DNA of 64,000 nucleotides, taken from the NCBI GenBank assembly GCA_977017575.1, contig CDRNVI010000169.1, positions 74,431-138,430 on the forward strand, in the 5' to 3' direction. Origin of the DNA: Paramoeba atlantica (taxonomy: Eukaryota > Protista > Discosea). Under the pieces are notes generated by a model that did not search any database, was not told the origin of the DNA, and saw nothing but the letters and a program-made list of their open reading frames with translations. Each line of letters begins with the position of its first letter. Within the stretch, counting starts at the first letter, position 1. Shown here piece after piece: positions 52,383 through 59,300 of this stretch. The translations under genes were made by a program, and so were the position numbers.

Positions 52383-52691
52383 TTACTCAATATCGCATAC
52401 ATACAATCGGCTTTGATTCATATACGAACAAACCCCAGCATTACAACCACAACCATCAACAAGACAATCCCAATCGGCTTGACATCCAAGAACAGGATAA
52501 TTTTCTAAAACAATATCACTTCCATAACAATAACCGCCATTACAGAAACATCCATCCGCTCCTCCAACATCGCCGTAACATGAATCGCAATAATACGCAC
52601 ATCCATCCGAAAATTTCACCATCACAGAGAAAAGGATCACCAACGAGAATAATCCGATCAATGATCCACCCAAACGCTTTTGCACGGCCAT
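52383..52691 (-). CDS. Small secreted Cys-rich protein (~102 aa, 12 Cys)
   Basis: MAVQKRLGGSLIGLFSLVILFSVMVKFSDG is hydrophobic, followed by a Gly/Cys/Tyr/Asp-rich mature region. The start is uncertain because the frame stays open to 52913. Confidence 0.6.
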   Translation of the reverse strand: MAVQKRLGGSLIGLFSLVILFSVMVKFSDGCAYYCDSCYGDVGGADGCFCNGGYCYGSDIVLENYPVLGCQADWDCLVDGCGCNAGVCSYMNQSRLYVCDIE

Positions 52692-52977
52692 AGTTTGAAT
52701 AGAGGGACGATAAAGAAAGAGAAAAATAATAATTCTATTACCCCAAAAACAAAAATCAAAAAACAAAACCAAAAGAAAAAGGAAGAGTGACACTTTTTTC
52801 TCCCCTTTTTCTGAACCAATCAACCACTGCCACGTAGATTGCCGAGAATTTTGACCCTTTTTGAAGCAATTTCCAGTCATTTCGACAGTTTGAGGGAATT
52901 CCAAACTGCTCACTAAAAATAAAGGAAAAATAAACTTAATAAAAATATTTATTTTAATTTAATTAATGAGTGAGAGT

Positions 52978-55900
52978 TCATCTTGGTGTCTTTCGAGGAG
53001 AATGAATAATGCCACTACTATCACTACCGCCACTACCGCCACTACCATCACTAGGGCCATTACTCGTGACAGTACTACCTCCTTTGGAATAATCAGGCAA
53101 CAAAAACTTTTGTTCTTCTGGCAAGTTGCGATCTTTGAAAAAACCATAGAGAATGAACCCGACAACCATCAGATAAATGGAAAAGAACCACAACCAAAGC
53201 CCGACCTGAATCAAAATCCAAGACATAAAAACTTGGTCATCAGTTGTCAAGATAATTGGAATAAAAAGGATCATCAAAAAGACAGCAACATACAGAGCAA
53301 AACCAATATGTTTCGCTTCACTGTACACAGAAGGAAGCTTCCTTGATTTCCAAGCAAGTCCCGCACTCACTAAGATTAAAATAAACTTGTAAACAACCAA
53401 AATAACAAAGAAAGGCAAAGGATCATTTGCAACACAGACAGCATGATGGTCTCCATCCACCTTCTTCAGACCAAGCTCAGGAAGATCAACTGCACTCCAA
53501 ATAATCAAAACAATCACATCCACAGCAATAATCCCTCCCGTAATCCCCAACAACATGGTGTTTGAGATCTTCAAAATTTGGAAACCAGTGTGGCACAAAA
53601 CACGAAAGACTTTGTATTGCTTCGCTACCAAGCTCCCAATCACTAAACCAGAAGGAATTGCAATCCACCATGAAATCATTCCACATTTCGCATCAGATGC
53701 CTTTCCATAAAAGAGGAAACAACTACTCATTCCCCACATCACACCAATGTGAAGTTGAGCTAAGAACCCAAAACCGGCAGCACAAACCCGACCGCGGGAC
53801 CGATGATAAAACAGAAAGATGAGAGAAATGAAGACAAGCAAGATGGAGAAGGATATTAAAGAGGCAAAAACGATTGTCGCAATCTTTACACTTGGATTGC
53901 AATCAGAGTCCTCGTCTTTCCAGTTGTTACAATCTATAATTTCATCACAAACTAATAAAAAATGAAAAGAGAGAAAGAGATTAAGAAAGAAAAATCCAAA
54001 AGGAAAAAGGAAAAAAAAAAATTGTCAAAAGAAAAGCAAAAGTAAACCAAGCTCAGCTCGAATAAATTCAGGGTTGCCTGTCAGAGGAGGAGGGACAACA
54101 TGACCAATATTATCGACAAAAGTAGACCCATTCGAACAGTAAAAATACTCGTTTGCGATCGCTGTCTCACACAAATCTCCTTCAAAACCAGTAAGACAAC
54201 GACATCTACCCTCCTCACAAATACCTCAGAGGAACAAAAAAAAAAGTTTCAGATATTCCCTTCAAAATTTTGATTGATGGATCATTCAATCTTAAAAAAA
54301 AGACCCCCCCTCTTGACCCAAAACAACCAAAAATTATTCACAAAATAAAATGATTTACCTTGTCCAAAACAATCACTCTCACATTCCCAAAACCAGTTCT
54401 TCCATGTCTCATTATTCGCTAAAACCCAAGCACAAGCTGTTGAGTAAATAGTAGCATTTGCTGTGAAATAACACTTAATTATTGACATTTTTTTTTAAAA
54501 AAAAAGAAAGATGTGTCTTAAAAAAAAAAAAAAAGAAACACAAACGGACATAAGAGAGGACACCAAGCAACCCTTCATGATCTCCATTTGTCATCACAAA
54601 TTTTTCATAAAAGTTTCGAAGCGCAGGGTCTAAATCATTTCTGTTTTTTTTTTTTCAATTCTTTGTCAAAAAAACTGGTTTTTCCTTTTTGGAACAGAAC
54701 ATAAAGAAAGAATAAAAACCTCTGTGTTGCATATTTTGCAACAACAACAGATTTATAATCACAATCGTACGTCGTCTCCCACTATTTTTATTTTTGGATG
54801 AGTTTGAAGAATTCGAGCGAGAAGGAAGAGAAGAGAGAAGGTTTTTTGATGATAGGAGGAAGGGGAAAAAAAGAACAAAAAAAAAAAGTACATTGTCCTG
54901 ACACTCTTTGGTCCATCGAGGAAGTGCAACCCTCTCCAATCGATAATTAAGATAATCTGGCGAGTCAACAAATTTGTACCTGAAAGAAGAGTGTGGTGAT
55001 TTGTTTTAATCATGGAGCTCTTTCAAAAGATACTTTATCACTCGAAAAAGAAAAGAAAAAAAGATTTCAAAATTACTTTGCGAAAATCTGAGTCGGCTCC
55101 CAATGAGTGAAGAGATAAGGTTGAACTGCTCTGACACGGTCGTCCCAAATTGCCAAATAATCTGGGATAGTTGGATGATTGATCCATTCCAGGCATAACC
55201 CCTTATTTTCAATTACTTTGAGTGCTCCAACAGAGCTAGTCCAACCTGGAGCTGTCCCTGTGTTTGTGTTTGGTTTCAGAGGGTTTTCAGCAGAGAAGGA
55301 GGTGAAAAACTTGAGGGGAGAAAAAAAAAAAAAAACAACCTCCAAGCTCTCCCATGGTTCCTGTTGTATTCTCACTATCCAGAGCTATTGTGTCAGAACA
55401 CCTAGTAGGAGGGGAAAAAAAAAAACTCTTCAGATCTTGGGGATCTCTTTTTGTGGCGATTATTTAAAAGGAAAGTGAGTGATTTCTCTCCTCTCACCTG
55501 GCAAAAGGACGATAAGAGGCGAACGGTTCATAGCCATCAACAGCGTACTTAGTTATGAACCATCCATTACGACCAATTACACCCAAAGATCCAATTCTTG
55601 AGACAGCTCGACGATCAATGAAAGATTTGATCAACTCTTCACGGCCATCTTCCCAAACTTCAAAGGAGACATCACAAGTCCCATCTTCCATTCCATCCCA
55701 GTTGTATTCGTAGCTCTCATTTGAGGTTTTTCTGCGGAAAAGAAATTTGGTTTGGGAAGGAGGAAAGAAAAAAAAAGGAAGAAAGAAATGACAAACACGT
55801 AACGGACATCGTAACCCCCATATTCATCCAAAAGAATCGAGGCGATCTCATTATTCAAAAAAGCAGAGGGCCATCCGACTCTATAGCCATCCAACTGAGC

Positions 55901-56008
55901 AGTAATACCTTTTCTAACTGTTGTTGGTTTTTCAAGGCAAGCACACTCGCTCCGCGGGACGAAGAACGATCCAAACAAAACAAAAAGAAGATACAATTGC
56001 ATAGTCAT
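52978..56008 (-). CDS. Family-C (GABA-B-like) GPCR with an N-terminal glycine-betaine/OpuAC-type substrate-binding domain, EGF and LDLa-like modules
   Basis: Signal peptide; GWPSAFLNNEIASILLDEYGGYDV...DGTCDVSFEVW...GSLGVIGRNGWFI (OpuAC/ProX-like); CFGQGICEEGRCRCLTGFEGDLC (EGF); YCSNG...VCDEIIDCNNWKDEDSDC (LDLa-like); 7TM with AKQYKVFRV, YKFILILVSAGLAWKSRKLPSVYSEAKHIGFALY (7tm_3). Confidence 0.85.
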
Positions 56009-56334: not shown

Positions 56335-59300
56335 TCAAGCCCAATCTCGCAGCATCGCCGCAAACACCCCTCCCATGACCGGTCTTGCTTGGAATCCTTG
56401 TCGATCTCCTACAAAAAGAAGAAGAAAAACCAAAAGAAAAGAAGTGAGCAATTTTTTAAAAATATTGAAAATCCATCAAAATAATTTGGTTGAGTTACTG
56501 ACCAGAAATGGTGTCGTACCTGTGGTATTAAAAATAAAAATTAGAAAGAAAGAAAAACATGTTCTTCAAAAAAAAAAAAAAGAGAAGAATCACAAAAAAG
56601 GAAGGAAAAAAAAAAGGAAAATCTTATTACCAATCAGTCAATGGAACACGAGAAGTTGTTGAATTGGCATAATCATAAATAGTACTCAAAATTTCCAAAA
56701 ATTGATCTTTTTCTGGAGACATAGCTGCATCTCTTGTATTAATCTCTTTTCGAAAAAATGAAGAAATGAAAGAAATAAACAAAAAAAAAAAATCCAAGTC
56801 AATTGGAACAAAAAAAAAATGTTATTCAAGATTTCAAACCTGCTGCCCACATGTTCCAATCAGCCTAATGAATATTTTATAAAAATAGAGTCAATAACCA
56901 CAATTTCAATAACCACAATTTCAATAACCACAATTTCAATAACCACAATTTCAATAACCACAATTTCAATAATAAAAAAAATTGAAAGTCAAAGAGAAGA
57001 AAGAAAACCTTTCCAAAAGTTGCACGATCATCAAGTGGCATTCCATATTGGTTCAATTGATCCCCCAAATAATACTAATTATATTAATTACTCATAAAAA
57101 TAATATTTTTTGGTAAAAAAAAAAGACTCTTGGTTAATTGTTGTCTTTCAAATAGGGGAACAAAACAAAAATATGGGAGAAAAAAAAAATTTCAAAAACT
57201 AAAAATCAATAAAAATAAAAATACAGTGATTTCTTCTTCATAAACGGAAGAAGGAAAAAGATTTGTCCCAATCAAAAGATCAAAGAGAAGATTGTACTTC
57301 ACAGACCACGTTCCACTCAAATTATACTATTTTTCAAAGAGTTTGATTGAAGAGAGAGAGAGAAGACAAAATAAAAGAGAGAGAAATTTTGAGAAAGAAA
57401 CCTGGAGACGATAATGATCTCCATCATCAGCATTTGTCAGCCAAAATGGAACAAAATTAACTGCAGACTCGTAATAACTATTAAAAAAAATAATTTCATT
57501 TTAGTTAGTTTGCAAGAAAAAAATTTAATTGAACAAAACGAAACAAAAATTTTCATTTTTAAATACAAATTTAATTGAGTTTCTCAAAACTCAAAATAAA
57601 GGGTAAAAGAGAAATAAATTAAAAAATAACTAAAAAAGTTTGAAAGAAAAACCGGGTAGCGTTTTGATGGTCACCACTACAATTTAGTAAATATGAATAT
57701 GCAGCAAGACCAACAATTCCCTTCACAAAAGAATTATTAGAATTGAGAACAGAGAGAAGGGAAAGTAGAAAGAGAGAGAGAGAGAGAAACCTTTGCAGCA
57801 AGATTAACGTTCTGTGGTGATGGACCTTATTAAAAAATTACTTTTAATTCAGAGAGAAAAGAGAGAGAGGAGAGAGAAAAAGACCTTCAAAATCATCAGT
57901 ACAAAGTTGATCCTGTGGATCAGGCAAACTACTATTTAGATAATCTCCCCAAATGGCCAATAAAGGCCAATAATCCTAAAAATAATAAAAAGAGAAAACA
58001 TATTTTTTTTTTTAAGAATCTTTGTCTTTGTAAATAAATCAAAAAAGAAACATTTTTTTTAAAAGCAGAGAAGAAGAAAAAGAAAAAAAAAAAAAGAACT
58101 TCAAGAAAAGAAACATCACAAGATTGATGTTGAGCAACCGAAGCCATCATAATAAACATATTTCCTGTCTCTTCCATAGGCATCTAAAAAAAAAAAAAAG
58201 AGATATAAATTCTCCTTCCCTTTCTCTCCCTCTTCTCCCTTTCTCGTTCTTTCTCCATCTCCACCTCTCACCCCTCTCTTTCATATCCCTCTCTTCCCCC
58301 TTCCTCTCTTTCCCCCTTCTCTCTTTTCAATAACCTGTTCCTGATCTTCAGGGCGAATATCACAAACAGGCCAAACACCAAGATGATGAGGAGACCATGC
58401 CAAATTATAAGGAACATCCAGTCCATATTGTGCTGTCTGGTTATTTGAGTATTCGAGAAGTGGGAATAGCTAAAGAGAAAGAGAGAGAGAGAGAGAGGAG
58501 ATTAGTATCATCAAAGAGAGAGAGAGAGAGAGAGAGAGAGAAGGAGAGAAGAAGGGTGAAAAGAGAGGAGAATACTTGAAGTTTGAGACTTTCAGGAGAT
58601 AAGAAAAGGAAAAAAGGAGAAGCTGGATAAAGTACATCGACAGTAGAGACATCTCCATCTGAACTAATTTCCTTTTCAATGAAGAATTAATCATCTTAAA
58701 AGAATAAAATAAAAGACAAATTCCAAAAAAAAAAAGGAAATGAAATTTCAAGAAAACCTTCACAAAGAGCCAAAAAGCTGAAATTCGATCATTCCAAACC
58801 TTTATTGGGAAGAAAAAAGAAAAAAAAAATCAAATAAAAGTAAAAAAAATTATTAAAATAAAAGATTAAATCAAAAAATATCCCATGAAAAAGAAAAAAA
58901 AAGGAAAAATAAATACAAGTTTTGTTGAAGCAGTGACTTGTCGATAAACAAGAGACCCCAAACGAGAGTATTCTTCCCCTATTCCCATTTTCTTAATCTC
59001 TCAAAATGAAAAGGAAGGAAAAAGAAAAGAAAAGAGAAAAAGAGAAAAAGAGAAAAAGAGAAAAGAGAAAAAGGGAAAAAGGGAAAAGAGAAAAGAAAAA
59101 AACCTCCCACAAGATCCAATTTTTCTTTCAATTTGGTATCAAAATCATAACAATCAGCCATCAGAGTATAATATCTCTAGAATTCCAATCAAAAAATGAG
59201 AAAAAGAACACACAAAAAGACACATAAAAACACACACAAAAACACAAAAAAAAACAAACAAAAAATACAAAAATACAAAACAGACAAAACAGACAAAAAG

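Follow-up and report, generated by a model that had tools for sequence, protein, structure and literature searches.

Class C G-protein-coupled receptors (GPCRs) of metazoans (mGluR, CaSR, GABA-B and T1R) have a seven-transmembrane (7TM) core of the 7tm_3 family and a bilobed head that closes on the ligand. Class C receptors act as dimers and couple to heterotrimeric G proteins. In metazoans the head is an ANF_receptor domain (type I), and the stalk of mGluR, CaSR and T1R is NCD3G, a module found to be absent outside Metazoa in the survey of Krishnan et al. 2012 (PMC3251606). Amoebae have class C GPCRs with a bacterial-type periplasmic binding head as well, namely the Dictyostelium Grl receptors, which include the folate and lipopolysaccharide (LPS) receptor fAR1 used to find and engulf prey (PMC5969738); their Bmp head belongs to the Pfam clan Periplas_BP rather than PBP (PMC3251606). 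OpuAC heads were catalogued in the 2012 survey on six Allomyces macrogynus receptors with the architecture OpuAC+7tm_3 (AMAG_01750, 04252, 14324, 14326, 15836 and 17562), classified as ‘Glutamate-family’, and de Mendoza et al. 2014 (PMC3971589) reported that the OpuAC configuration is conserved in “distant eukaryotic lineages”. Full-text literature searches returned the architecture in these two surveys only, and their supplements give no species list for OpuAC. Here we analyse a gene from a 64,000-nucleotide stretch of the Paramoeba atlantica genome (assembly GCA_977017575.1, contig CDRNVI010000169.1, positions 74,431 to 138,430; hereafter the window), located on the minus strand at positions 56008-52978 and referred to below as the OpuAC-GPCR gene. 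It is a further member of this catalogued and functionally uncharacterised kind of receptor. Its product is probably a single-chain class C GPCR that senses onium solutes through the tryptophan cage of a complete OpuAC/ProX-type head (cluster F, type II) and signals through a stalk and a G protein. Bacterial proteins of the OpuAC fold bind glycine betaine, choline, trimethylamine N-oxide (TMAO) or dimethylsulfoniopropionate (DMSP) with high specificity, and these solutes rank among the chief currencies and signals of the marine environment.

We built the exon model from the six-frame translation together with the sequence itself, in which short T-rich introns interrupt the coding blocks. The gene runs from an ATG at 56008 to a stop codon at 52980-52978 and comprises 10 exons, whose coding sequence of 2187 nt (728 codons and the stop) keeps consistent phases throughout; the introns, 65-134 nt in length, are without exception GT-AG. 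One spliced model with consistent phases and the same ends had already been put forward in the initial annotation, and ours bears it out. The encoded protein begins with a predicted signal peptide, after which come a complete binding domain of the OpuAC/ProX type, the EGF module, one half of an LDLa-like motif and the 7tm_3 core, distributed as follows:

55797..56008, minus strand: exon 1, which has the start codon and specifies the predicted signal peptide (residues 5-17 form its hydrophobic core), then strand 1 of the OpuAC N-lobe, with Trp46 as a cage candidate
55498..55731, minus strand: exon 2, which completes the OpuAC N-lobe; it contains the ‘EVW’ motif, whose Trp97 is a cage candidate, and, on the hinge side, the ‘GRNGWF’ strand
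55340..55401, minus strand: exon 3, a micro-exon of 62 nt for the loop running into lobe II; found in C148, C155, L012, L013 and P0002 (see below)
55077..55257, minus strand: exon 4, OpuAC lobe II; Trp175 lies in its ‘PGW’ motif, and Trp222, with Pro after it, in its ‘HWEP’ motif
54892..54979, minus strand: exon 5, the OpuAC strand going back to lobe I (‘LERVALPRW’)
54720..54781, minus strand: exon 6, the second 62-nt micro-exon (‘YDCDY...’)
54546..54640, minus strand: exon 7, a helical segment of OpuAC (‘DLDPAL..FY..F’)
54359..54460, minus strand: exon 8, the C-terminal OpuAC helix (‘AC.WV..N..W..WF’) and EGF cysteines 1-2
54048..54224, minus strand: exon 9, the rest of the EGF module, then a conserved spacer of ~35 residues with one Cys
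52978..53951, minus strand: exon 10, with the LDLa-like half-motif, the 7tm_3 core, the tail and the stop
53899..53951, minus strand: 5' end of exon 10, with the LDLa-like half-motif immediately ahead of transmembrane helix 1 (TM1)
53191..53880, minus strand: the 7tm_3 seven-helix core in exon 10, from the Pfam PF00003 match and hydropathy peaks
52978..53190, minus strand: Gly/Ser-rich cytoplasmic tail and stop codon, 3' end of exon 10

A first model with 8 exons was rejected because its phases clash at two junctions; comparison with a paralogue then revealed the two 62-nt micro-exons (exons 3 and 6), which are easily overlooked and are conserved in all homologues. A strong-looking acceptor upstream of exon 4 was also discarded, since its use creates a stop.

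Comparative support for the predicted splicing is strong. First, by searching the genome (45.7 Mb, 248 contigs) we found two collinear paralogues, on contigs C148 (locus L001) and C155 (locus L010), so that the genome holds three OpuAC-headed genes, the OpuAC-GPCR gene and two sister copies. Each exon has a counterpart block in a paralogue, with identities of 38-59% (38% for exon 1 against the C148 paralogue), and the similarity does not extend past the exon edges. Second, with the 7TM exon as query, HMMER returned from the full library, among other relatives, two orthologue-like metagenomic loci (L012 and L013), both with the exon order of the OpuAC-GPCR gene, and a relative from a Tara Oceans eukaryote (P0002). 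Exons that are separate in our gene are fused in these homologues: exons 1 and 2 form one open reading frame (ORF) in C148, C155, L012 and L013; exons 5, 6 and 7 form one in L013; exon 6 is continuous with its neighbours in two homologues (L013 and P0002) and with exon 7 in three (C148, C155 and L012); and exons 8 and 9 form one ORF in L012 (protein P0023), L013 and P0002. Third, in P0002 the whole of the sequence from exon 3 through the stop is one uninterrupted 621-codon ORF, found on three independent contigs, that carries OpuAC at 36 bits, EGF at 26.1 bits and 7tm_3 at 109 bits. When exons 3-8 were all entered as fragments and placed on P0002 with MAFFT --addfragments, they tiled the ORF without overlap, exon 4 (44% identity) adjoining exons 3 and 5 without a break; exons 9 and 10 match P0002 in separate comparisons. 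A word search of proteins with the P0002 ectodomain returned P0002 alone and is uninformative on absence.

Intron positions vary widely among the copies (the OpuAC-GPCR gene, L001, L010, L012, L013 and L003). C148 is interrupted within both exon 9 and exon 10, C155 within exon 9 and L012 within exon 10, and the Tara relative is nearly intron-free. These loci thereby form a compact data set for intron gain and loss inside one receptor family.

The last exon is unambiguously a class C 7TM core. 7tm_3 (PF00003) matches it with an E-value of 9.2e-35 and 120.9 bits, against a cut-off of 33.5, over profile positions 7-238 of 251, and the genome profile scan gave 118.8 bits at the same locus. The ‘EAK..GF..Y’ motif of TM6 is presumably common to the OpuAC-GPCR gene and metazoan class C receptors. 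The bilobed binding-protein-type head lies upstream of the 7TM in the same spliced gene, and the P0002 ORF displays their continuity in one chain, so that the gene fits the class of OpuAC+7tm_3 fusions by having both domains on one eukaryotic polypeptide. The core and, in overall design, a two-lobed head that would close around the ligand are features in common with the metazoan class C receptors; the head differs, being a type II OpuAC domain instead of the type I ANF_receptor, and so does the stalk, which consists of the EGF module and the half LDLa-like motif.

The EGF module has six cysteines at residues 338-364, across exons 8-9. EGF_Teneurin scores just below threshold in our gene (E-value 3.9e-4, 20.8 bits) and above it in P0002 (26.1 bits). 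As for the LDLa-like part, only its C-terminal acidic half with three cysteines is found (C-D-x3-D-C-x4-D-E-x2-C), and it is sub-threshold in Pfam; Ldl_recept_a matches weakly at positions 21-37 of 37 in the C148 paralogue (E-value 0.075) and at positions 19-37 in P0062 (E-value 6.6e-4). The same half-motif (C-D-x-x-I-D-C-x-N-x-S-D-E-x-x-C, then P-S and TM1) is present in 40 of the 150 relatives nearest by 7TM sequence and accompanies ANF_receptor, Bmp-Kelch or OpuAC heads alike (proteins among P0003-P0147). Since it precedes TM1 whatever the head domain, it is a trait of the receptor chassis and not of the OpuAC type. NCD3G had no Pfam match in any exon of the gene or in the relatives searched, and the half-motif looks like a non-metazoan counterpart of the NCD3G stalk. 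We infer the signal peptide from hydropathy (hydrophobic core at residues 5-17). Thus, of the domains listed in the initial annotation, OpuAC, EGF, 7tm_3 and, by hydropathy, the signal peptide stand, and the LDLa module is reduced to its C-terminal half.

Then, we examined the identity of the head, scoring the exons singly against OpuAC (PF04069; gathering cut-off 21.2 bits). Above the cut-off are the fused exon 1+2 of the C148 paralogue (23.3 bits), P0002 (36.0 bits, profile positions 114-255) and two fungal relatives described below, P0138 and P0050 (26.8 and 25.6 bits). The hits on the homologues jointly span profile positions 2-255. An N-lobe family profile made of six sequences and run against PDB matched DmpX (7YLE, E-value 1e-3), 4XZ6, which we take to be the TMAO binder TmoX (E-value 1.1e-3), and Bacillus subtilis OpuAC (2B4L, E-value 3.5e-3); these are ligand-bound structures, and both N-lobe tryptophans of the family align to Trp in each of them. 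In ESM Atlas, 100 of the 100 clusters nearest to P0002 residues 37-215 are annotated OpuAC, and residues 39-215 gave a structural TM-score of 0.81 against a bacterial OpuAC cluster. Together, the profile and ESM Atlas matches of the relatives point to a two-lobe fold like that of the solved OpuAC members. Less came from other searches: the family C-part profile aligned end to end, weakly, with Escherichia coli ProX (hhalign, P 0.049), the alignment counterpart of exon 3 being the ‘LFDTNGDGKADLTG’ region of ProX, and in PDB exon 4 alone had no match, P0002 residues 37-215 matched only 3TMG (E-value 0.45) and the Blastocladiella ectodomain gave chance VP1 matches only. ANF_receptor or Bmp as the head was rejected, the Pfam and profile evidence being for OpuAC; both of those head kinds sit on other receptors in the genome. 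These data support the OpuAC/ProX-type assignment first proposed for this head.

A cluster in ESM Atlas (791 aa, 65 members, mostly Oomycota) is annotated only as 7tm_3 and has a head that resembles the OpuAC-type segment of P0002 (TM 0.65 by query). We regard this predicted resemblance as a lead only. OpuAC-headed receptors may be under-counted by Pfam.

The best guide to the binding pocket is DmpX, a DMSP-specific protein whose ligand is contacted by Trp35, Thr64 and Trp84 in lobe I and by Glu113, Trp152, Ala153, Tyr200 and Trp202 in lobe II; the charged sulfonium sits in a cage of the four tryptophans, Tyr200 is essential for DMSP binding and the Glu113 contact is water-mediated (PMC10030565). 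The invariant N-lobe tryptophans of our family, Trp46 and Trp97 in the OpuAC-GPCR gene, align significantly to DmpX Trp35 and Trp84, and the Thr64 position is Thr in C148 and, by position counting, Ser in our gene. For lobe II we used the E. coli ProX sequence from its annotated record, in which the literature positions Trp65, Trp140 and Trp188 were confirmed to be Trp. Although the alignment is weak (P 0.049), hhalign sets the invariant ‘P-x-W’ on ProX Trp140 and the invariant ‘W-E-P’ on Trp188 and its proline, which correspond to Trp175 and Trp222 here. The spacing agrees with that of DmpX, with 49 residues in the first pair, identical in both, and 47 versus 50 in the second. All four candidate cage positions are Trp in the 6 homologues examined (the three paralogues, L012, L013 and the Tara relative). 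This conservation lends support, at the level of sequence, to the idea raised in the initial annotation that the gene encodes a candidate osmolyte receptor. Thus, a sensor for betaine, choline, TMAO or DMSP-type solutes appears plausible.

With the bacterial onium-binding proteins (DmpX, 4XZ6, OpuAC and ProX) the head has in common the PF04069 family, collinearity over both lobes and the ‘W-x-P’ motif, and with DmpX the Trp at all four candidate cage positions, the lobe II pair by the weak alignment. However, whereas the bacterial proteins dock on a permease of the ATP-binding cassette (ABC) type, this head is covalently joined to a 7TM domain, and no ABC components belong to the gene. It also bears the marks of a eukaryotic protein, namely a predicted signal peptide, introns, extra cysteines and N-glycosylation sequons. 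The DmpX polar ligand contacts Glu113 and Tyr200 are not conserved in the OpuAC-GPCR gene, and for this reason the specific ligand cannot be named.

We propose that the two lobes would close on a small solute with a quaternary ammonium or tertiary sulfonium group, such as glycine betaine, choline, carnitine, TMAO, DMSP or similar, whose charged group would be held by Trp46, Trp97, Trp175 and Trp222 as in bacterial DmpX, TmoX, ProX and OpuAC. A rigid, disulfide-rich stalk (the EGF module, the spacer and the half LDLa-like motif) would then pass the closure on to the 7TM core, which would activate a heterotrimeric G protein; several G-alpha genes are present in the genome, a precondition for such coupling. 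The role would most likely be to sense osmolytes from prey or neighbours, or the cell's own osmolyte efflux. For prey, Dictyostelium fAR1 may serve as a precedent, being an amoeba class C GPCR (PMC5969738), although the Grl receptors differ by their Bmp head and bind other ligand classes. If the proposal holds, a eukaryotic receptor built on the bacterial pocket is a concrete and testable candidate for solute sensing by amoebae and other protists. In practice it offers a short list to work from: the three paralogues, the four tryptophans of the proposed cage and the ectodomain (about residues 23-337) as a soluble protein.

Several points weigh against an onium receptor of this kind. First, the exons of the gene itself, taken singly, fall below the OpuAC gathering score, the best being exon 2 with 16.7 bits at profile positions 37-99, and a lobe II profile of three sequences and 59 residues found nothing in PDB. 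Second, the lobe II cage assignment comes from motif spacing and the weak hhalign alignment already mentioned. Third, the position of DmpX Tyr200 appears to be Thr in our gene (Tyr in C148 and C155), and that of Glu113 is Asn or Ser. Fourth, the junction between exons 2 and 3 is the sole one bridged in no homologue, and this junction and expression are supported by comparison only. Finally, our literature searches found no functional study of an OpuAC-headed GPCR, be it of ligand binding or of G-protein coupling, and no report of one being de-orphanised. The initial annotation had reckoned with an architecture already characterised: its design is indeed catalogued, but its function has been studied in no report found.

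Among the alternatives, we consider it unlikely, yet worth keeping in view, that the architecture is as described but the head has been repurposed for a ligand without an onium group (amino acid, sugar, ion or macromolecular cue), with the tryptophans kept purely for structure. Identity to the bacterial binding proteins is low, with E-values of about 1e-3 even by profile, extra cysteines have been gained, and the loss of the Glu113 and Tyr200 contacts would fit such a change; moreover, the flytrap head of fAR1 binds unexpected ligands such as LPS (PMC5969738). On the other hand, no copy examined has a residue other than Trp at any of the four candidate cage positions, and the four-Trp pattern defines the onium-binding members of this fold (PMC10030565).

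It is improbable that the product is an onium receptor devoted to autocrine osmoregulation, responding to the cell's own osmolytes released after hypo-osmotic shock and not to prey or host. Database annotations assign bacterial OpuAC-family proteins to osmoprotectant uptake, and relatives come from marine samples (the Tara contig), where salinity stress is relevant. Nevertheless, three paralogues diverged to 38-59% identity fit a small chemosensory family of differing specificities better than one homeostatic sensor; beyond this, nothing in the data separates the autocrine role from prey-sensing.

That the locus is a silent or decaying copy, unexpressed or non-functional despite its intact frame, seems very unlikely. 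All ten exons are open with canonical splice sites, and conservation is confined to exons across five loci. In addition, of the five sequencing runs found, a small one from 2015 on this organism, which may be RNA, contains 7% of the words sampled from the gene, a hint of transcription only. Lastly, although the joins are inferred and no intron-free homologue bridges exons 2 and 3, two adjacent genes misjoined into one (a secreted OpuAC-like protein and a separate GPCR) are essentially excluded by the single stop-free ORF of P0002 with the OpuAC C-half, EGF and 7TM, to which can be added that L013 and P0023 (L012) join the last OpuAC helix to EGF in one ORF and that the same order recurs at three loci of this genome and in the fungal P0138 and P0050.

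Returning to the onium-sensing GPCR as the preferred reading, a more speculative extension can be formulated, to which we give rather low credence: in these receptors, eukaryotes might have their first identified sensors at the cell surface for marine onium ‘infochemicals’ (DMSP, glycine betaine, TMAO and choline), with the three diverged paralogues perhaps tuned to different compounds, so that a phagotrophic amoeba would follow its algal or bacterial prey, or find the surface of a host, via G proteins. If true, this would offer molecular access to the perception of cues of the DMSP type by grazing protists.

The architecture itself is not new, contrary to what the initial annotation implied. 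Besides Allomyces (2012) and the distant eukaryotes of the 2014 survey, we found OpuAC+7tm_3 in Catenaria (ORZ40981.1, P0138), in Blastocladiella (KAI9176061.1, P0050) and in the Tara eukaryote. With the same fusion in blastocladiomycete fungi and other eukaryotes, an independent recruitment of the binding domain can no longer be regarded as a trait specific to this organism. The blastocladiomycete receptors resemble ours in their Pfam architecture, in a homologous N-lobe (local phmmer E-value 4e-8) with both N-lobe tryptophans, and in that NCD3G is found in none. They differ by having neither EGF nor the LDLa half-motif by Pfam, and by their long C-terminal tails. Furthermore, the fungal 7TM domains rank only 50th and 138th among the relatives of the OpuAC-GPCR 7TM, so that a single common fusion event is not established by these data.

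A profile search of the contigs gave eight 7tm_3 loci in the P. atlantica genome. Three of them carry an OpuAC head, two a Bmp head, which makes two Bmp+7tm_3 genes like those of Dictyostelium, one an ANF_receptor head and one a PBP_like_2 (PstS-type) head; the head of the remaining locus, a 1023-codon ORF, has no Pfam match. The 7tm_3 genes other than the OpuAC-GPCR gene lie on contigs C190, C160, C180, C155 and C148 (loci L005-L010 and L001), and at least four kinds of head are present in the genome. One 7TM chassis combined within one genome with ANF, Bmp, PstS-like and OpuAC heads illustrates modular receptor evolution.

Two further features of the window flank the gene. Just downstream on the same strand (52383-52700, minus), a short ORF encodes ~90 residues rich in Cys and Gly behind a hydrophobic leader, and may specify a small secreted cysteine-rich protein. 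On the other side, at about 56880-56990, lies a tandem repeat with a 15-nt unit, whose translation is a run of ‘ISITT’ from one strand and of ‘LKLWL’ from the opposite strand.

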